A stretch of 64,000 nucleotides of DNA from the sequence record NC_031107.2; one strand, 5' to 3'. Under the pieces are notes generated by a model, which ran no database searches, had not been told where the DNA came from, and saw nothing but the letters and a program-made list of their open reading frames with translations. Shown in pieces: positions 3,969 through 55,614 of the stretch (within the stretch, counting starts at the first letter, position 1; each line of letters begins with the position of its first letter). A program made the position numbers and the translations under genes.

Positions 3969-4769
3969 ATGAAAGCGATTCACACGTTTCGCATGTCAGG
4001 ACAAACGCTTCTGAGCATCGACGAATACGAGAAAAAACACTTCTCTAAACCGGCGAAGTTATTCGAACGTTGCGTGCAGCTGATGCCACATGGCCAACAG
4101 CAGCAACTGGACTTTATCATGGCTTCGTCCATGGACAAGACCGTTGCCGTCATCTTTACCGTTGACGGTGTTCAAGGCAAACGTGATCTCGCTATCACTG
4201 ACCCCGGTAGCCTCGGTGACTTGCTGTTCCGTCACGCGCTGACCACCGCGGTGATTACCGGTGCCCTGGAAGCACAGTACGGTTTTGCCTACTGCTACTT
4301 CTACGCCCAGAAAATCTCCAACACCATCGTGCCGGGCGACGTGGATACTTATCCGCAGTATATCGAGCAGCTGACACCGGCTGAGTTCGGTGAGAACGAA
4401 GACTACGAGTTCAACGTCTTCCGTTTCACCATGGTCGGCGAATCGCGTGTCAAAGAGTTCACCACGGCGTTCCGTGCGGTTGTCCGTTATGCGGTACTGC
4501 CGTCGGATGAAGGTATTTCCAGCAACTTCAATGAAGTGTTCCCGGTATTGCAGCTGGGGCCGTATATCACCTTCAACGGCTACGTGCCGTTCCCAGCACA
4601 GATTGTCGGGCCGCTGAACGACAACTCGATTCTGCCGATTGCCGAAGACCGCGACCTGTACAACTCGAAAGCGGTGATGTTGGTCAGTGAAGATCGCTTC
4701 AACATCTCCATCCAGGCGGGTATCAATGACCACGCAATTGCGGTCACTGAGAAGATGGCGCTGCGTTAA
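3969..4769 (+). CDS. Hypothetical protein, 266 aa, strong high-expression codon bias (possibly virion)
   Basis: SD ccttAAGGA; C-ending codon bias; followed by a terminator. Confidence 0.7.
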   Translation: MKAIHTFRMSGQTLLSIDEYEKKHFSKPAKLFERCVQLMPHGQQQQLDFIMASSMDKTVAVIFTVDGVQGKRDLAITDPGSLGDLLFRHALTTAVITGALEAQYGFAYCYFYAQKISNTIVPGDVDTYPQYIEQLTPAEFGENEDYEFNVFRFTMVGESRVKEFTTAFRAVVRYAVLPSDEGISSNFNEVFPVLQLGPYITFNGYVPFPAQIVGPLNDNSILPIAEDRDLYNSKAVMLVSEDRFNISIQAGINDHAIAVTEKMALR

Positions 4770-4773
4770 CCGT

Positions 4774-4810
4774 TACCCGACCTCCTTGTGGGGTCGGGTA
4801 TCCTTTATTT
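4774..4810 (+). terminator. Intrinsic terminator
   Basis: tacccgacc...ggtcgggta stem followed by a T-rich tract. Confidence 0.7.
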
Positions 4811-4940
4811 GTTTGCTAAAAGCCACACAGAGGCCATAACGCTATCTCAGGCAACGTATGTACCATAATCGCTTAGAACGCGTTACAGCGCGTTTGAGAG
4901 CGTTTTTAGGGGGATAAAAATAAAGTTTGACTCCAATCAT

Positions 4941-5015
4941 TTTCAGATATATATTACCTGCATGAGAGAAAACAATTATCTCTCTAATTCGACCATTACC
5001 TAAAGGAGTTTTAAA
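4941..5015 (+). promoter_or_regulatory. Early promoter (AGATATATATTAC) with leader hairpin, TCGACCA box and SD
   Basis: Contains TATATTAC, the published phiKZ early consensus; the module recurs at 34794 and 55113. Confidence 0.7.
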
Positions 5016-5261
5016 ATGACTAAGATTGAATTCATGAAAGACATGACCAAATGTTTCGGTATCGCTGTTCTGACCTTGGCAGCATTCATCATCGGTTTCA
5101 TGTCTCCGTTCGCGGTTATCGATGCCGTGACGTACCTGACCGGTAACATGGTTATCGGTGCACTCACTGGCGGTGCTTGGGGTGCAACCCTGCTGTGTGG
5201 TAGCCTGCTCGGCTGGCCTAACAAACTGGCTAATTACCTGAAAGCCAAATTCAAGAAGTAA
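5016..5261 (+). CDS. Small membrane protein, 81 aa, 2 hydrophobic segments
   Basis: SD cctaAAGGAG; two hydrophobic stretches; basic C-terminus. Confidence 0.75.
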   Translation: MTKIEFMKDMTKCFGIAVLTLAAFIIGFMSPFAVIDAVTYLTGNMVIGALTGGAWGATLLCGSLLGWPNKLANYLKAKFKK

Positions 5262-5270
5262 CAACAAAGC

Positions 5271-5295
5271 AGGCCACCACACGGTGGCCTTTTTT
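5271..5295 (+). terminator. Intrinsic terminator
   Basis: aggccacc-acac-ggtggcct followed by a T tract. Confidence 0.75.
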
Positions 5296-5341
5296 ACGTC
5301 CGGCAATTAACTCGACCATTATCTATTAAAGGAATACGACC

Positions 5342-5486
5342 ATGATTTCTCGCAAACATAAACTCGCTATTTATTCTATCGCCGTGGCTGTACTGGTAAC
5401 AGTTGGCATGATGACTGTAAACAACGACTACAACACCTGCCGTGCCAACGGTAACTCAGTTGCAATGTGCACAGGACGTGGCTAAG
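5342..5486 (+). pseudogene. Small membrane-peptide gene apparently frameshifted right after its ATG
   Basis: SD + ATG at 5342, but the phage-like reading frame (FLANIKLAIYSIAVAVLVTVGMMTVNNDYNTCRANGNSVAMCTGRG*) runs 5346-5486 in the +1 frame and ends 1 nt before the next ATG. Confidence 0.45.
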
Positions 5487-11927: not shown

Positions 11928-11968
11928 GCTTACTCCCTTCGGGGAGTAAGCTTTTTCTTTTTTTTATC
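11928..11968 (+). terminator. MCP terminator (UUCG loop)
   Basis: gcttactccc-ttcg-gggagtaagc followed by T tracts. Confidence 0.8.
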
Positions 11969-12001
11969 CTAAAATTTCACAGATAGATATTATCTTGGTG
12001 A
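11963..12001 (+). promoter_or_regulatory. Early-type promoter, AGATAGATATTATCT variant
   Basis: 37/39 identical to 49638..49676; similar to the TATATTAC class. Confidence 0.65.
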
Positions 12002-12033: not shown

Positions 12034-12843
12034 ATGAAAGAGTTCGATATTGGACAGGTTATCAATGTAAAGGCCACTGCCGTCGGTGTTATCGTTACGG
12101 TGTTGGATAGAGACAGTCATTTCCATGAGACGACAGAGATTGCCTATCCTCTCCACGCGTTCGATATCCTCCAGCACTTCCTGACCGTAAAACATGCAAT
12201 GCTGAAAGGGGATTTCGGCAAATATAAAGAGTACGAGACCACCCGCATAAAGGACATGAGATCCATCATCCTGGGCGATGTGATGTGTAAGCTAACCCGT
12301 TACTCCTTTCCTGAGTCAAAGGATGAGCCAGAAATAATCAGCAACCTCGAAGGGTTTCTCAAGAAGCTCGGCCTGTATCAACCCCACCACTTCCCGGTCG
12401 GTATTCAAGAGTGGAGAGACCACGCCCGCGTTATTCCGTTTAACATCGGTCGTGATGTCAATGAGCTGCGTTCGTTGACAGATGCGTTACGCGAGTCATA
12501 CACGCCACAGTGTGAGTTGATGGAAAATCTGCGTATCTACGGCCGCTATATCGATCCGCAGTACACCTTTGTTATCCCTGAACGTGGCGACATCGCTACA
12601 GGGGGCTATTGGGTAGAACCACCACACAATCCCCACATCGTTCCTAACTCGCCGTACATTCCGTTTAATTTCGCATCAGTAAGGCTTCACCAGCTGGCCG
12701 ATGTCCTTAACGGTATCGCCCAAATGGACACGTTGCCTAACGGCGGGTTCGAAGTGCGAATGGTTAATGGCCTTGGTAATATCAGTCTGGCTACCCTGGA
12801 GAAAGAAGATTTGCGTGCATTGGTGAAAGCCATCGCTCGCTGA
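12034..12843 (+). CDS. Hypothetical accessory protein, 269 aa
   Basis: SD ctAAAGGAG; has its own promoter; sits between MCP and the RNAP block. Confidence 0.75.
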   Translation: MKEFDIGQVINVKATAVGVIVTVLDRDSHFHETTEIAYPLHAFDILQHFLTVKHAMLKGDFGKYKEYETTRIKDMRSIILGDVMCKLTRYSFPESKDEPEIISNLEGFLKKLGLYQPHHFPVGIQEWRDHARVIPFNIGRDVNELRSLTDALRESYTPQCELMENLRIYGRYIDPQYTFVIPERGDIATGGYWVEPPHNPHIVPNSPYIPFNFASVRLHQLADVLNGIAQMDTLPNGGFEVRMVNGLGNISLATLEKEDLRALVKAIAR

Positions 12844-12854
12844 CTCTATCTTTT

Positions 12855-12930
12855 TACGCCACGCGCAGTCCCTATGCGAGTCGCGTTCAAAGTATTCTGA
12901 GATAGATATTATCTACGTGGTTGTATCTAT
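12855..12930 (+). promoter_or_regulatory. Tandem promoters: TAC-N15-TATG (12855-12876) and AGATAGATATTATCT (about 12900-12914)
   Basis: Both recurring motifs lie upstream of the 335-aa gene and the nvRNAP subunit. Confidence 0.55.
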
Positions 12931-23326: not shown

Positions 23327-24213
23327 TGGCTAACACCAAAGTTTACGACGGTAAACTCTCGACGGTGACACTGAACGCAATGCGCTTGTCTACCGCACTC
23401 ATCATGGGTTGCGATGTTCAGTATCCGCAAAAGTCGACTCTGAACGAATACTACAAACTCCAGACCGCGAAACTGCCAGATGGTACCGATCGTCCACACA
23501 TGCGCTATATGTGCGTGGGGAACCGTGGCCACATGGTTGACCAGTCTGATGTGGTCGCTGACGTAGTGCCGGTGGGCAAGACTCCGATTACGTCGGGGAT
23601 GTTCTCGCGTGTGCCGCTGGTGCTGCGTACCATGGATAATGACCTGTCGGACGAACAGCGTAAAGATTACGCCTTCCGTGTGCAGGAAAACATCAACGGT
23701 CGCGATTACTGGGCGTACTACCTGAAACGTGTCGATATGCGTGCGGTGAAAACCACTGACCTTGATATCACGCGTGAAAACGGTGTGGAGAAAATCGAAG
23801 ACTTCGTCTACACCGATGCCGAACTGAACCCGGTACCGAAAGAGCTGCCGGAATACAACTTCGACGATGACGGCACCGTGGAAATCCCGGATGGTCGTTA
23901 CGTGGAGTCAGGTGCTGACCTGGTAATTCCGTGGACAGAGTTCGACGTCCAGGAATACATGAATGTCACCAGCATCATGCGTGGTTCTCCGCGTAGTTCT
24001 ATCATCTCTGAGATTGCCCTGTGTTCTGGTATGGACACTCCGGCATCAGGCGAATCTGCCACCGGGTCGAAGTTCACGTACGACGAAGCCATCGGTGTGC
24101 AAGCACTGTACTACATCTCTCTGTTTACCAACCTGGCACAGACCAATGACCGTCTGTCACTGACAATCCGTGTCGGTCAGCCTGCGCCGTTCTTCTTAGG
24201 AACTGCGAACTGA
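23326..24213 (+). CDS. Probable virion structural protein, 295 aa
   Basis: GGAG SD; coupled ORF in the structural operon. Confidence 0.55.
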   Translation: MANTKVYDGKLSTVTLNAMRLSTALIMGCDVQYPQKSTLNEYYKLQTAKLPDGTDRPHMRYMCVGNRGHMVDQSDVVADVVPVGKTPITSGMFSRVPLVLRTMDNDLSDEQRKDYAFRVQENINGRDYWAYYLKRVDMRAVKTTDLDITRENGVEKIEDFVYTDAELNPVPKELPEYNFDDDGTVEIPDGRYVESGADLVIPWTEFDVQEYMNVTSIMRGSPRSSIISEIALCSGMDTPASGESATGSKFTYDEAIGVQALYYISLFTNLAQTNDRLSLTIRVGQPAPFFLGTAN

Positions 24214-24866
24214 TGATAATTCCCGAGCCGAGATTGCCTGACAGGATGGTTCGGATAGCCTGCGTTGACCCCGGTACATCCCACCTCGGGATGGCGGTAT
24301 TAGACTGGGAGTACGGAGCAGAGATAGCCGAAGTTGTCTGGGCAGACACGGCTCACGTTACGAATTCCGCCCACTACTCTTCGTTCGCGGAGACGGTGGG
24401 CAATCGTGACGAGCGGTTGGTGGAATTGCAGGAAACGTTCCGTGAGTTCTTGCGGATTGCGTGTCCGACATTTGTCACAACCGAGACGCCATTCATGCGA
24501 CGGAAGACATTGTCCGCGTATGAGTCTGGGGTGGAATTGCAACTTATGTTGCGTCGTACACTCTGGGAAGTCTACCCAGAAAAAGTCCTCCATGGGTTCA
24601 ACCCCATTATTGTGAAATCATACGTCGGTGTGGAATCAAAGGGCACAGATAAGACGCACATGTTTGCGGCTGTCTGTAAACTATATGCTGACCACACCCT
24701 CATTGATTTATCGACGCTGGATGAACACAGCATCGATGCCGTGGCGGTGGGTAACATCTTCGTCAGGGTCAACTTATTAAACTTAAATAGCCTGCTCCCG
24801 CCGCGTGTCAAAGCGCCGAAAGGTGCCGCAGGCAAGAAGCGGCGAAGTAAGCGTCGGAGGAAATAG
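24213..24866 (+). CDS. RuvC-like Holliday junction resolvase, 217 aa
   Basis: RNase H-fold acidic triad IACVDPG / FVTTETPF / EHSIDAVAVG; basic C-tail. Confidence 0.75.
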   Translation: MIIPEPRLPDRMVRIACVDPGTSHLGMAVLDWEYGAEIAEVVWADTAHVTNSAHYSSFAETVGNRDERLVELQETFREFLRIACPTFVTTETPFMRRKTLSAYESGVELQLMLRRTLWEVYPEKVLHGFNPIIVKSYVGVESKGTDKTHMFAAVCKLYADHTLIDLSTLDEHSIDAVAVGNIFVRVNLLNLNSLLPPRVKAPKGAAGKKRRSKRRRK

Positions 24867-27607: not shown

Positions 27608-27660
27608 GCCCCGGTTAGTATGATACCACCAACAGAGCCAGCTGCCGCGGGAGTCCAGAA

Positions 27661-29257: not shown

Positions 29258-30409
29258 ATGTCGACGCTCGATTTAGATTTTGAAGTGCTCACCGATGATT
29301 GGGAACGCTTAATAGCGTTAGAGTCTATTGGTGTCGGGGTCGACAACCCGGCTGTACAAGCGATTTGTCGACGTTGGTGTATCACCGACGAAGAACTGGT
29401 GGTGGCACGCGAATCACGCGAAATGATGGAACGTGCACAAGCTACCGCCGATGCCGCTTCGCAGGGCAGCATTGCTGACGTCTACGCCCGTAAAGCCATT
29501 AAAGGCGTCGGTAAAGTCGCAGTGAAAGGGGCGGCTAAAGTCGGTATGAAGGCGGGGCATGTCACCGCAGATGTATCGAAGAAACTGATGCACCGCTTTA
29601 ATGCGTTTGCAGCCGACCTTGCCAAAGAGCAAGTCGAGTACATGAAAGAGGCGGTCTCTAAAGCGACACGTCTCGAAAAGCAAGCGCAACACCTGGCGAT
29701 TGAATTAAAAGAACACAAGACCCTCAACATTCACCCGGTTGAAACGGGACGCTGGACGTCGAAGGTCTGTATCGAAGATAAAGTGGATGTGCACGGCTGC
29801 ATCGGCTTTATCTCACGAGGTGGTGCCTTAGAAGGGGCGGTGCAGGAATATGTGGTGCGTACCCGCGGTGTACTGGAATCGAAGAAAATCAACGAAGACG
29901 GTACACTGGATAAATTCGGACGTTCCACCAACTGGGCTATCAAACGCGCCGGTGGGTTACTCGGCATTGTTACTCCGTTTAAGAAAGTCATTGCACGACC
30001 GCTTGCCGGTAACGTGATTCTGGTTGAGCACCATAACGGACTTATCCAGTATTCGGTAGCGAACGATGGTGATTACGACGACCACATCCCGTCTCTGTCC
30101 CATGCGGATTGTGACGCCGCCCTGAAAGCGGTACGTGAGATTGTGGGTCTGCTACGTGAACGTGGCGTGAAGCGTAAAGCGGTTGGCTATACTGGGATTA
30201 ACCAGGAAGTCGAACACATGCGCTCTGAGCTGAAAACGGTGGCACCGAAAGACCTGTCTATGCTGACCAAAGCGTATAAGTCTGCGATGGCACTGGAAGA
30301 TGCGTACACCACAGCGCTGGTGCGTATCGGTGAAGGGTTGCTGGAATACGTTAAACGTTCGCTGAAAGGGCAAGGCAGCAATGAAAATCATTCTGATAAC
30401 AAAGCCTGA
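29258..30409 (+). CDS. Probable internal head (ejection) protein with propeptide, 383 aa
   Basis: Acidic N-terminus with IALE-S and VARE-S protease-type motifs, then a basic helical region, like phiKZ-type head paralogs. Confidence 0.5.
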   Translation: MSTLDLDFEVLTDDWERLIALESIGVGVDNPAVQAICRRWCITDEELVVARESREMMERAQATADAASQGSIADVYARKAIKGVGKVAVKGAAKVGMKAGHVTADVSKKLMHRFNAFAADLAKEQVEYMKEAVSKATRLEKQAQHLAIELKEHKTLNIHPVETGRWTSKVCIEDKVDVHGCIGFISRGGALEGAVQEYVVRTRGVLESKKINEDGTLDKFGRSTNWAIKRAGGLLGIVTPFKKVIARPLAGNVILVEHHNGLIQYSVANDGDYDDHIPSLSHADCDAALKAVREIVGLLRERGVKRKAVGYTGINQEVEHMRSELKTVAPKDLSMLTKAYKSAMALEDAYTTALVRIGEGLLEYVKRSLKGQGSNENHSDNKA

Positions 30410-34750: not shown

Positions 34751-34787
34751 ACCCCTCTTACCTTCGGGTAAGGGGGAGCTTTATTTT
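34751..34787 (+). terminator. Intrinsic terminator (UUCG loop)
   Basis: ccc(ct)cttacc-ttcg-ggtaagggg followed by a T-rich tract. Confidence 0.65.
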
Positions 34788-34793
34788 AAATAT

Positions 34794-34868
34794 TCTCAGA
34801 TATATTTTACCTAGGTGAGAGTTGTTGGTTGAACTCTTAATCGACTATTAATCTAAAGGAGTATTACC
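34794..34868 (+). promoter_or_regulatory. Early promoter/leader module
   Basis: cagatatattttacctaggtgagag, hairpin, TCGACTA, ctAAAGGAG. Confidence 0.65.
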
Positions 34869-35240
34869 ATGGCACGTTTTAAACACGAATCTGTACATCT
34901 CGTAAAAATGAAATTCTTGGTACGTTTGTCTTTCATTATCAAACGTATTACCGAGGTGGATATCACCCAGAAAGAACTGGCCGAGTTCATCGGGTGTTCT
35001 GCTTCCCAAATCTCCGCCGTGAAGAACGAGCGTGAGAAAGCCGTTACCGTACAAACCCTGATGCGTATCGCCGATGCGCTCAAGCTGACCTACAGCATTG
35101 AGCTGCGTTCTTTCAACGGTAAAGTTACTGAGAACTTCCGTCTGGAATCGGCGGTCGAGTACATGAAAGAGAATCCTATCCGCGTACTGGAAACCGGGAT
35201 TCGTGTTCTGGCTCGTCGTCAAAATGTCGTTACGCACTGA
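34869..35240 (+). CDS. XRE-family HTH transcriptional regulator, 123 aa
   Basis: ITQKELAEFIGCSASQISAVKN...TVQTLMRIADAL is a canonical Cro/C1 HTH. Confidence 0.8.
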   Translation: MARFKHESVHLVKMKFLVRLSFIIKRITEVDITQKELAEFIGCSASQISAVKNEREKAVTVQTLMRIADALKLTYSIELRSFNGKVTENFRLESAVEYMKENPIRVLETGIRVLARRQNVVTH

Positions 35241-38717: not shown

Positions 38718-38997
38718 CCGTACTGTCGCTAAAACCAAAGAAGTCCTGTACGTTGTTGTGGATGGCACTGAGAACCAATTCGATGCGGTGATTGATGAAG
38801 ACCATGTGCTTCATATCGCCTATCCGGAGAAAGAGGTCACGCGTCCCCATCAGCGCGTAATGGATAAACTGATTACCAAGGCCAAGGCGCGGGACGGGAT
38901 TAAATCGCATGTCCTTCACACCGGTTATGTGTTGCAGCAGGGCCAATCTGAGATTCTGATTGCCGCGATGCCGAGCGAGCGTACCTGCTTAGTATGA
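38707..38997 (+). CDS. Hypothetical protein, 96 aa
   Basis: AAAGGAG SD before ATG 38707. Confidence 0.65.
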   Translation: MQINRTVAKTKEVLYVVVDGTENQFDAVIDEDHVLHIAYPEKEVTRPHQRVMDKLITKAKARDGIKSHVLHTGYVLQQGQSEILIAAMPSERTCLV

Positions 38998-39953: not shown

Positions 39954-40014
39954 CTTTCAGATAGATGTTATTGTGAGGAATACTAACATTCCTCTCATTC
40001 TAAGGAGTGTTCTC
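39954..40014 (+). promoter_or_regulatory. Early-type promoter with leader hairpin
   Basis: tttcagatagatgttattgtga; GAGGAAT/ATTCCTC stem; TAAGGAG SD. Confidence 0.55.
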
Positions 40015-49604: not shown

Positions 49605-49610
49605 ACCTTA

Positions 49611-49640
49611 CCCACTCTTCGGAGTGGGTATTTCTTTTTT
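49611..49640 (+). terminator. Intrinsic terminator (UUCG loop)
   Basis: tacccactc-ttcg-gagtgggta followed by a T tract. Confidence 0.8.
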
Positions 49641-49734
49641 ATCCTAAAATTTCGTAGATAGATATTATCTTGGTGAATGCGCGAAAATTACGCGTCGACC
49701 AGTCGATATGTGTTATCCCTTAAGGAGTATTCTC
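49638..49734 (+). promoter_or_regulatory. Early-type promoter and leader
   Basis: Near-identical to 11963..12001; GCGCG/CGCGT hairpin; TCGACCA; ccttAAGGAG. Confidence 0.65.
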
Positions 49735-55051: not shown

Positions 55052-55089
55052 TACCCTACTCCTCCTGGAGTAGGGTATTTCTTTTTTTT
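55052..55089 (+). terminator. Intrinsic terminator
   Basis: taccctactcc-tcct-ggagtagggta followed by a T tract. Confidence 0.8.
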
Positions 55090-55112: not shown

Positions 55113-55191
55113 TTTCAGATATATATTACTTAGGTGAGAGTTAATACAAATCTCTCACTAATCGACCATTTAACCTAAAGGAAATTGTACA
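55113..55191 (+). promoter_or_regulatory. Early promoter/leader module
   Basis: tttcagatatatattacttag; GTGAGAG/CTCTCAC stem; TCGACCA; cctAAAGGA. Confidence 0.7.
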
Positions 55192-55614
55192 ATGAATACT
55201 ATCACTCTGAACGACAACGTACGCGCTCTGGCTAAATCTAACCCGACTGCACTGCTGACAGTAATTGGTTATTACACCACTGCTGGCAAAGTTAACGATA
55301 TCGATGTTGAAGCTTTCCAGAGGCATGTCACTCACGCTCAGAACCAGGTAGCGATGATGGCAGACCACAAACGTGAAGACTTCGACTCTGACCTCGCTTT
55401 CAATGACCAGGTGAACACGCTGACCATCATGCGTGAAATGCGCCTGGGCATGAACCATCCGTTTGAGGCGGATAACATCCCGGATATGATTGAAGAGATG
55501 TACGAGCGTATGCGCACTTACCCAGAAGTTAAAGCTGCGCGCAAAGCACTCTCTCAAACAACCAAAGACATGGAAGCGGCTTTCATGAACAAAGCGAAAG
55601 CTGAACTGTACTAA
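55192..55614 (+). CDS. Hypothetical early protein, 140 aa
   Basis: High-expression codons; followed by hairpin gggagagcc-ta-ggctctccc. Confidence 0.75.
   Translation: MNTITLNDNVRALAKSNPTALLTVIGYYTTAGKVNDIDVEAFQRHVTHAQNQVAMMADHKREDFDSDLAFNDQVNTLTIMREMRLGMNHPFEADNIPDMIEEMYERMRTYPEVKAARKALSQTTKDMEAAFMNKAKAELY

Follow-up and report, generated by a model that had tools for sequence, protein, structure and literature searches.

Whether a short hairpin that changes its sequence from site to site can be a genuine element of phage messages, and what it might do there, is the question raised by the leader of gp83 in Erwinia phage vB_EamM_Asesino. Asesino belongs to the genus Erskinevirus and is a phiKZ-like chimallivirus, i.e., a nucleus-forming, chimallin-encoding jumbo phage, whose nearest relatives are phiEaH2 (hereafter EaH2) and Stratton (~85% identity), followed by the SPN3US group. 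The stretch considered here, referred to as the window, comprises 64,000 nucleotides (nt), i.e., record positions 62001-126000 of NC_031107.2, and coordinates are those of the window unless the record is named. Upstream of gp83, it carries, in this order, an AT-rich promoter motif, a hairpin, a TCGACCA box and an extended Shine-Dalgarno sequence. A preliminary description of this DNA had taken these four parts for a single repeated module and had proposed, for the hairpin, either a tag for an RNA-binding protein or a recombination cassette comparable to those of T4-type phages. The sequences and stems that it quoted all lie where it placed them and pair as it described. Comparison of the whole genomes of Asesino and SPN3US, together with the first 50 kb of phiKZ, leads to another partition, in which the hairpin is tied to one of two promoter classes and the box stands apart.

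The hairpin and its promoter

It is the shape of the hairpin, not its sequence, that is conserved across related phages. A consistent hairpin is found only behind class 1 of the promoter, or the AGATATATWTTAC class (AGATATAT(A/T)TTAC; window positions 4945, 34798 and 55117; seven sites in Asesino and six in SPN3US), where it starts at an invariant G located 7 nt after TTAC, the predicted transcription start (+1). The longest stem begins exactly at this G in 12 of these 13 sites, the mean stem measures 7.2 base pairs (bp) as compared with 3.6±0.4 in shuffles, and over their first 32 nt the leaders average -7.0 as compared with -2.05±0.5 kcal/mol. A scan of IMG/VR with AGATATATATTACYTAGGTGA returned 39 stretches, all from jumbo-phage contigs of 107-246 kb or fragments, and about 35 of 40 distinct sites have the hairpin at the G. 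Scanning with the bare 14-mer mostly returned unrelated matches, which were re-used as a negative control. A stem of at least 5 bp starting from the predicted +1 occurs in 68% of 56 distinct related sites, as compared with 15% of 86 unrelated 14-mer contigs; over the 56 sites, the register profile of stem starts peaks at +1, and 39 have a helix that ends right at the invariant G.

The stems themselves differ widely, as illustrated among the IMG/VR sites by GAGAGTTAA/TTAACTCTT, GAGATTAC/GTAATCTC and GAGCATTGA/TCAATGCTT, and further by GAGCGTTA/TAACGCTT, GAGGAT/ATCCTC and GATAGA/TCTATC. When 50 sites were aligned with MAFFT, no gaps were opened and the 3′ arms did not line up; a covariance model, built from 12 sites of equal hairpin length, was used instead and found 60 sites. 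In this alignment, which is fitted to the model and contains many orthologous rows, 86.6% of the paired cells are filled by pairs as compared with 74.0±1.5, double-sided changes number 42 as compared with 16.6±2.9, and the covariation score is 0.240 as compared with 0.106, with none of 500 shuffles reaching 0.240 and scores of 0.056 or less when the partners are slid by 1-3 columns. Alignment-free tests agree with these numbers. Under a stem-finding rule that scores G·U and A·C alike, the related sites contain 28 G·U and 5 A·C, an excess which argues that selection acts on pairing in the sense strand, as it would for an RNA. Orthologous sites of Asesino and SPN3US provide individual cases: at gp271, GAGATTA/TAATCTT is replaced by GAGCGTTA/TAACGCTT; at gp22, a C-to-T change turns an internal G-C into a G·U; and at gp118, where the loops differ, the stems diverge only in the closing pair (G·U vs G-C) and TCGACTATTAATCTAAAGGAGTATT is identical. 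The claim of a structure conserved without sequence is thus borne out by the covariance model across relatives, by compensatory changes and by the predominance of G·U over A·C. The freedom of the arms is narrower than had been described, since GAG opens nearly every 5′ arm, at a constant 7 nt from TTAC; the first three base pairs are nearly invariant and the rest of the stem covaries. Loops (3-11 nt) and stems (5-9 bp) vary in length, no loop or bulge sequence is common to the sites, and Rfam gives no match at or above the gathering score in the 64-kb window.

Class 2, or the AGATAGATRTTAT class (AGATAGAT(A/G)TTAT; window 11981, 12900, 39959 and 49656), differs in its leaders, which are mostly 27-37 nt long (one of 60 nt) as compared with mostly 49-61 nt (one of 103 nt) in class 1; the difference corresponds to the ~21-nt hairpin. 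As a group, class-2 leaders show no significant hairpin (mean stem 4.1 vs 3.05±0.46 bp in shuffles), and the early leaders in the first 50 kb of phiKZ show no consistent one (4.5 vs 3.8±0.5 bp). A hairpin as a general trait of phiKZ-type early transcripts was accordingly set aside, and the earlier expectation of a hairpin at every listed site holds for class 1 only, the class-2 stems at 39975 and 49679 lying in a different register.

The promoter motif, AGATAKATDTTA, is matched exactly seven times in the window, each time on the + strand, where 0.02 matches are expected, and has 13 copies genome-wide, again all on the + strand, each tens of bases before an annotated start codon. Five of the seven had been listed previously, and those at 11981 and 12900 had been missed. 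SPN3US has 15 such promoter sites, at orthologous positions for most. The early-promoter intergenic regions examined in phiKZ contain TATATTAC, five variable bases and TG, and the core and spacing match those of Asesino. According to reviews, phages with split polymerases each carry a ~10-nt AT-rich motif before early operons, centred near -10, which has proved to be the early promoter wherever transcripts of such phages were mapped; extra conserved blocks lie near -20 and -30 in the early promoters of phiKZ and 201phi2-1. When the G after the bar in the class-1 consensus, ATTAAAAATAATTTCAGATATATATTACCTAGGT|GAG (58 distinct sites), is taken as +1, conserved blocks fall at -10, -20 and -30. Several split RNA polymerase beta/beta′ genes are annotated in the Asesino record, in which seven genes (gp40, 51, 52, 59, 240, 262 and 263) are assigned to the beta subunit. 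Because of these polymerase genes, the phiKZ-like core and spacing and the matching block positions, AGATAKATDTTA is most likely the early promoter of the virion RNA polymerase. The 2016 AR9 genome study by Lavysh is reported to have predicted early motifs for all such phages.

Judging from the geometry of phiKZ promoters, transcription would begin at the invariant G that follows TTAY by 7 nt, give or take about 3 nt, which agrees with the earlier placement of the hairpin at the 5′ end of early mRNAs, the start being predicted. No start-site mapping or transcriptome of Asesino or of other SPN3US-like phages was found in the literature, and public RNA runs yielded only metatranscriptome contigs of relatives, four of which were examined and carry no 5′-end information. 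At site A only, a near-consensus sigma-70-like sequence, TTGACT-N17-TATATT (10 of 12 positions; window 4927-4955), overlaps the early promoter and would put the start at most 2 nt from the same G (G4964). A sigma-70 promoter was rejected as a general reading, as the match is confined to that site and the consensus has no TTGACA-like -35 element. A contig from a wastewater RNA library (run X17, record 17; word depth 134) matches the promoter core only (window 4926-4959) and continues into unrelated sequence, in which another stem, CAAGC...GCTTG, lies a few bases further on; the contig probably represents an early promoter of an uncultured relative.

G+C-rich hairpins followed by a T run stand directly before four of the seven promoter sites in the window. 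The three class-1 sites lie on the + strand with all their parts. Promoter A (4927-4957, an AT-rich upstream part followed by CAGATATATATTAC at 4944-4957) lies downstream of a terminator-like hairpin that follows gp82 (4774-4800) and is followed by hairpin A (4964-4984; GAGAGA/9-nt loop/TCTCTC, 6 bp, predicted +1 at G4964). Promoter B (CAGATATATTTTAC, 34797-34810) comes after a terminator-like hairpin and T run behind the thymidylate kinase gene (34752-34787), and hairpin B (34817-34838; GAGAGTT/8-nt loop/AACTCTT, 7 bp with a closing G·U, predicted +1 at G34817) precedes box TCGACTATTA, CTAAAGGAG and the ATG (34869) of gp118, a helix-turn-helix protein (34841-34871). Promoter C (again CAGATATATATTAC, 55116-55129), downstream of a terminator-like hairpin and T run at 55052-55089, is followed by hairpin C (55136-55156; GAGAG/11-nt loop/CTCTC, 5 bp), which can be extended to 7 bp as GTGAGAG/CTCTCAC (55134-55158), then by box TCGACCATTT, CTAAAGGAA and the ATG of gp152 (55192; 55162-55194). 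The closing G-C of hairpin C is a G·U in EaH2, and its SPN3US counterpart has a rebuilt 3′ arm (GAGAGTTAA/TTAACTCTT).

Among class-2 sites, promoter CAGATAGATATTAT (11980-12000, +; preceded by a terminator at 11928-11965) is followed, after a spacer, by the predicted +1 at G12000 and the gp92 ATG at 12034 with no hairpin. Promoter GAGATAGATATTAT (12899-12919, +; predicted +1 at G12919) precedes gp93 (ATG 12954) with a weak, non-terminal fold; neither site has a hairpin comparable to those of sites D and E. At site D (promoter CAGATAGATGTTAT, 39958-39971, +), hairpin D (39975-39994, +; GAGGAAT/6-nt loop/ATTCCTC, 7 bp) starts 3 nt before the class-consensus +1 (39978), and the SPN3US orthologue of the site has no hairpin. 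Promoter E (TAGATAGATATTAT, 49655-49668, +; predicted +1 at G49675) lies behind a terminator-like hairpin and T run that follow the tail protein gene gp141 (49610-49640, +), and hairpin E (49679-49695, +; GCGCG/7-nt loop/CGCGT, 5 bp) starts 4 nt after that +1. As compared with EaH2, one pair of hairpin E changes from C-G to U-A and another from C-G to U·G, and because of these changes, hairpin E is probably a real structure of its own.

Possible roles of the hairpin

RppH and the 5′-end sensor of RNase E need a single-stranded 5′ end, which explains why structured 5′ ends have long been known to stabilise mRNA. In chimalliviruses, early transcription is housed in a vesicle that contains no ribosomes, so that the first messages emerge naked, and this provides a rationale for a shield. 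The reading that we favour, to which we give about even chances, is that the hairpin is a 5′-terminal stem-loop protecting immediate-early mRNA from 5′-end-dependent decay. In such a model, the virion-packaged multisubunit RNA polymerase of the phage would read each promoter and, at class 1, would initiate with the invariant G found 7 nt past TTAC. The leading ~20 nt of the transcript would then fold into a short stem-loop in which the 5′-terminal nucleotide is paired and, as a result, hidden from RppH and from the RNase E sensor. The first phage messages, made apart from ribosomes and before any phage counter-measures, would thereby be stabilised. A helix that includes the predicted first nucleotide, free sequence past GAG, free loops and pairing on the sense strand would together be all that a shield needs.

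Several points weigh against this reading. Class-2 and phiKZ early promoters are without the hairpin, so that early messages can evidently manage without it. The start position is a prediction and could be off by up to about 3 nt, and in 12 of the 56 sites, representing about five orthologue families, complementarity continues 2-6 nt further upstream of the predicted +1. The sequences are akin by descent, and the covariation alignment, with its many orthologous rows, was shaped by the model itself, so that the shuffle and covariation statistics overstate independence. Stems tend to be short and rich in AU (-3.5 to -9.8 kcal/mol), and single whole leaders fold no better than their shuffles (z -0.7, +0.1 and -0.2); the hairpin signal is positional and comparative, not thermodynamic. 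In leader B, moreover, the 3′ arm AACUCUU is complementary to the Shine-Dalgarno sequence AAGGAGU (window 34832-34861).

Two of these points call for further description. The upstream-extended pairing reaches the conserved TTAGGT at SPN3US 113985 (L123:13985-14040) and in L098, L137, L140 and L147, and to a lesser extent an extension is seen at window 55134-55158; a start fixed at the invariant G would not account for it, and it may reflect start-site variation. In the minimum-energy fold of the whole leader B, pairing with the Shine-Dalgarno sequence replaces the 5′ hairpin, and this alternative could be an on/off switch or could be due to chance.

An RNA-binding tag, as first suggested, would have a phage or host protein bind the base of the stem (GAG/CUY) and so label immediate-early messages, whether to let them leave the vesicle, to give them preference in ribosome loading or to have them shut off later. 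In favour of a tag, the first three base pairs are nearly invariant beside covariation in the rest, and the hairpin is limited to one promoter subclass and to early transcripts, the candidate late promoters described below having no such hairpin. In addition, reviews list the exit of early mRNA from the vesicle as an open question, and ChmC is a known nucleus-associated RNA-binding factor. Against a tag, loops of 3-11 nt and stems of 5-9 bp share no loop or bulge sequence, and GAG may be conserved simply as the sequence with which the promoter initiates. RNA polymerase subunit genes (promoter at 29795 before gp51/52) are among the class-2 early genes, which are without the hairpin, so that neither export nor translation can depend on it in general. 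Overall, a tag appears unlikely, and protein-independent shielding of the 5′ end fits the observations at least as well. A composite version, in which the GAG/CUY hairpin would be a dedicated immediate-early mark read by an injected or host factor and the box a later off-switch operator, is in our view quite unlikely.

It could also be proposed that the hairpin acts while the virion polymerase transcribes, i.e., in promoter clearance, in RNA release or as an early pause or attenuator. Such a role would agree with the strictly fixed distance between hairpin and promoter and with the T-rich TTTAC or TTAT that often follows the 3′ arm; in phiKZ, terminators consist of a stem-loop followed by TTAT, and premature termination in 5′ leaders has been reported in the literature. 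Against it, the stems are AU-rich with 1-3 U after the helix, hairpin A is not listed in a terminator scan of 4700-5400, and class-2 and phiKZ early promoters function without a hairpin, which is therefore no requirement of this type of polymerase. We regard a co-transcriptional role as decidedly improbable. An intrinsic terminator or attenuator in the usual sense was likewise judged unlikely: the listed class-1 hairpins have 0-3 T directly after the helix, short of the G+C-rich stem and run of at least 5 U of such an element, and the scan was negative for hairpin A.

Should the shield be confirmed, it would mean that these phages protect their first messages by RNA structure while transcription takes place apart from ribosomes; a tag, if true, would offer a direct handle on the exit of early mRNA from the infection vesicle, which reviews describe as unanswered. 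Whatever the role of the hairpin, the early promoters of SPN3US-like phages split into two classes with different leaders, and a listing of immediate-early genes in SPN3US-like nucleus-forming phages can now be drawn up from sequence. Promoter, hairpin and box are candidate parts for phage engineering.

The TCGACYATTA box, gp83 and late-type motifs

The box belongs to early transcription units as an element in its own right, linked to the ribosome-binding site and outside the promoter-hairpin unit; the idea of one four-part module therefore does not hold, as copies stand near ribosome-binding sites with or without promoter and hairpin. The bare TCGACYA 7-mer is not enriched across the window (21 observed vs 16.6 expected). 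The enrichment lies near genes: 12 of the 24 genomic copies of TCGACYAT are located 18-30 nt before an annotated start codon, in the sense orientation, where 0.2 are expected (P ~1e-17), and in 11 of these 12 the spacing is 26-30 nt. The full box reads (A/T)(A/T)TCGACYATTA and stands 3-9 nt before a TAAGGAG-type Shine-Dalgarno sequence, which is merely a strong ribosome-binding site. Six copies directly follow an early promoter, five of class 1 and one of class 2 (record 24556). The other six precede internal genes, each with a same-strand early promoter at most 3.6 kb upstream of it, which is unlikely by chance (~5e-5), since about 19% of the genome qualifies. Copies without a promoter include those before gp84, gp73 and gp205, and none is found before virion genes in the Asesino genome. 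The box is retained at orthologous SPN3US sites despite diverged flanks, and across relatives, GACYAT stands beside the Shine-Dalgarno sequence in 21 of 58 class-1 leaders, where about 1.6 are expected. The TCGACCA word at 49695-49701 (+), which the preliminary description had counted among the boxes, overlaps the last base of hairpin E, reads TACCCCA in EaH2 and is probably fortuitous, not a true box. The class-2 case (record 24556-24605) has a 30-nt leader in which the box, TCGACTATT, lies 4 nt after the predicted +1, and its sequence is almost identical to that of SPN3US 23809-23886 (GCAATCGACTATTCGCGGAG).

As a compact cis-element of early operons, the box would most likely be a second, independent RNA-level element, i.e., an operator or enhancer for stage-specific control of translation. 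Pairing with 16S ribosomal RNA as the basis of a translational enhancer was rejected, since the longest Watson-Crick run is 5-6 nt as compared with a shuffled mean of 6.3 (Escherichia coli 16S, as a stand-in for Erwinia). The main competitor is a second promoter or start region at which a non-virion polymerase would maintain early-gene expression at middle times. The box is strictly orientation-dependent and occurs without an early promoter before gp84, gp73 and gp205; a terminator-like T run comes right before it in three cases, which would suit a promoter too and counts against translational control, and tandem early and middle promoters are described in the literature for phiKZ gene 54. The spacing to the start codon is nevertheless very narrow (26-30 nt in 11 of 12, as compared with 24-45 nt for the candidate late motif TAGTATG), and the internal copies all lie within early operons, none before virion genes. 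Because of this narrow spacing and this confinement, a translational operator or enhancer is preferred, and a second promoter is regarded as rather doubtful.

At the site that raised the question, the box TCGACCATTA (4989-4998, +) lies 27 nt before the gp83 ATG and is followed by the extended Shine-Dalgarno sequence CTAAAGGAG and that ATG (5016; 5000-5018, +). The gene encodes 81 amino acids with hydrophobic stretches (PHROG 16811, unknown function) and occupies, with its terminator, window 5016-5295; the terminator is an intrinsic-terminator-like hairpin with a T run (5271-5295, +). A second TCGACCATTA, with neither promoter nor hairpin, then precedes TAAAGGA and the gp84 ATG (5342; 5312-5344, +). 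The neighbouring gp82, 84, 85, 86 and 88 have syntenic SPN3US homologues and gp83 has none; it is present in Asesino and EaH2 and absent from SPN3US, where the gp84 orthologue stands directly behind the class-1 promoter, hairpin, box and Shine-Dalgarno sequence. In Asesino and EaH2, gp83 and its terminator are thus enclosed by two copies of the box and Shine-Dalgarno sequence (4989-5008 and 5312-5333), which accounts for the lone box at 5312. This single case has the look of a gain or loss of gp83 through recombination between leader repeats, and recombination at these repeats is plausible as a by-product.

That the repeats are mainly recombination cassettes of the T4 type, or copies by descent with a functionless hairpin, is very improbable: the gp83 difference does end in two such copies and terminator-promoter pairs occur at four of seven sites, but only this one insertion or deletion was found, the stem-loop of T4 cassettes is an upstream terminator with a promoter of sigma-70 type, and stems that differ in sequence yet keep their pairs, orthologous sites included, run counter to the expectation for a homology substrate or for simple copying.

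A further motif in the genome concerns late genes. TAGTATG, which resembles the phiKZ late promoter T-A-T-G(+1), is strongly enriched upstream of genes, where seven of its nine genomic copies lie (window 27616-27622 and 38990-38996; record 233490(-), 162424(-), 161308(-), 159689(-) and 191710(-)), a fraction that becomes five of five for TAGTATGA and TTAGTATG. It is found ahead of virion genes, among them those of the tail sheath and baseplate, at 24-45 nt from the start codons checked, is conserved in SPN3US and is probably a late promoter of the non-virion polymerase of this clade.

Comparison with known systems

The jumbo-phage transcriptome papers and reviews searched (Ceyssens 2014 and Lavysh 2016 lay outside this set) do not describe any conserved hairpin where early transcripts begin, nor was a description of the box found in the papers and reviews searched. 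The promoter itself has clear counterparts. Like the early promoters of phiKZ and 201phi2-1, it has blocks near -10, -20 and -30, shares with phiKZ the TATATTAC core followed by N5-TG, and stands before small genes of unknown function, often behind a terminator. Unlike phiKZ, in which no consistent hairpin is found at +1, Asesino has two promoter subclasses, one of which inserts a hairpin of ~21 nt between +1 and a leader of otherwise ordinary length.

Early promoters associated with hairpins are also found in N4 and LUZ7, where they are likewise read by virion polymerases. In these phages, the hairpin forms in the upstream DNA, has a conserved 3-nt loop and places the start 13-14 bp downstream of its centre, for a single-subunit polymerase. 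In Asesino, by contrast, loops of 3-11 nt are not conserved, the G·U bias is of RNA type, the polymerase is multisubunit and the hairpin lies downstream of the AT-rich core, and an N4-type hairpin promoter was therefore rejected. The promoter-early stem-loop (PeSL) elements of T4-type phages are comparable as small regulatory cassettes repeated before early genes of unknown function, and one insertion or deletion, that of gp83, ends in the Asesino repeats. However, the stem-loop of a PeSL is a terminator upstream of a sigma-70 promoter, whereas the Asesino hairpin lies downstream of a promoter that is not of sigma-70 type, is not terminator-like and is not conserved in sequence. Identity with PeSL elements is thus ruled out, and the earlier analogy with T4 cassettes holds only loosely.

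T4 RegA-type translational operators act on early mRNAs and lie over the start codon. The Asesino box resembles them in standing beside the ribosome-binding site of a set of early messages and differs in its position, upstream of the Shine-Dalgarno sequence instead of over the start codon. For the hairpin, the closest likeness is to 5′-terminal stem-loops, of which the T7 phi10 leader is a stabilising example. In ompA and papA, the message is guarded against RppH and RNase E by a short hairpin at its very 5′ end, through the structure of that hairpin and not its sequence. The predicted Asesino hairpin differs in being linked to a promoter, repeated across a class of transcripts and conserved in a clade. 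Altogether, these comparisons suggest that the promoter is of a known kind and that the hairpin would best be filed among the 5′-terminal stem-loops.

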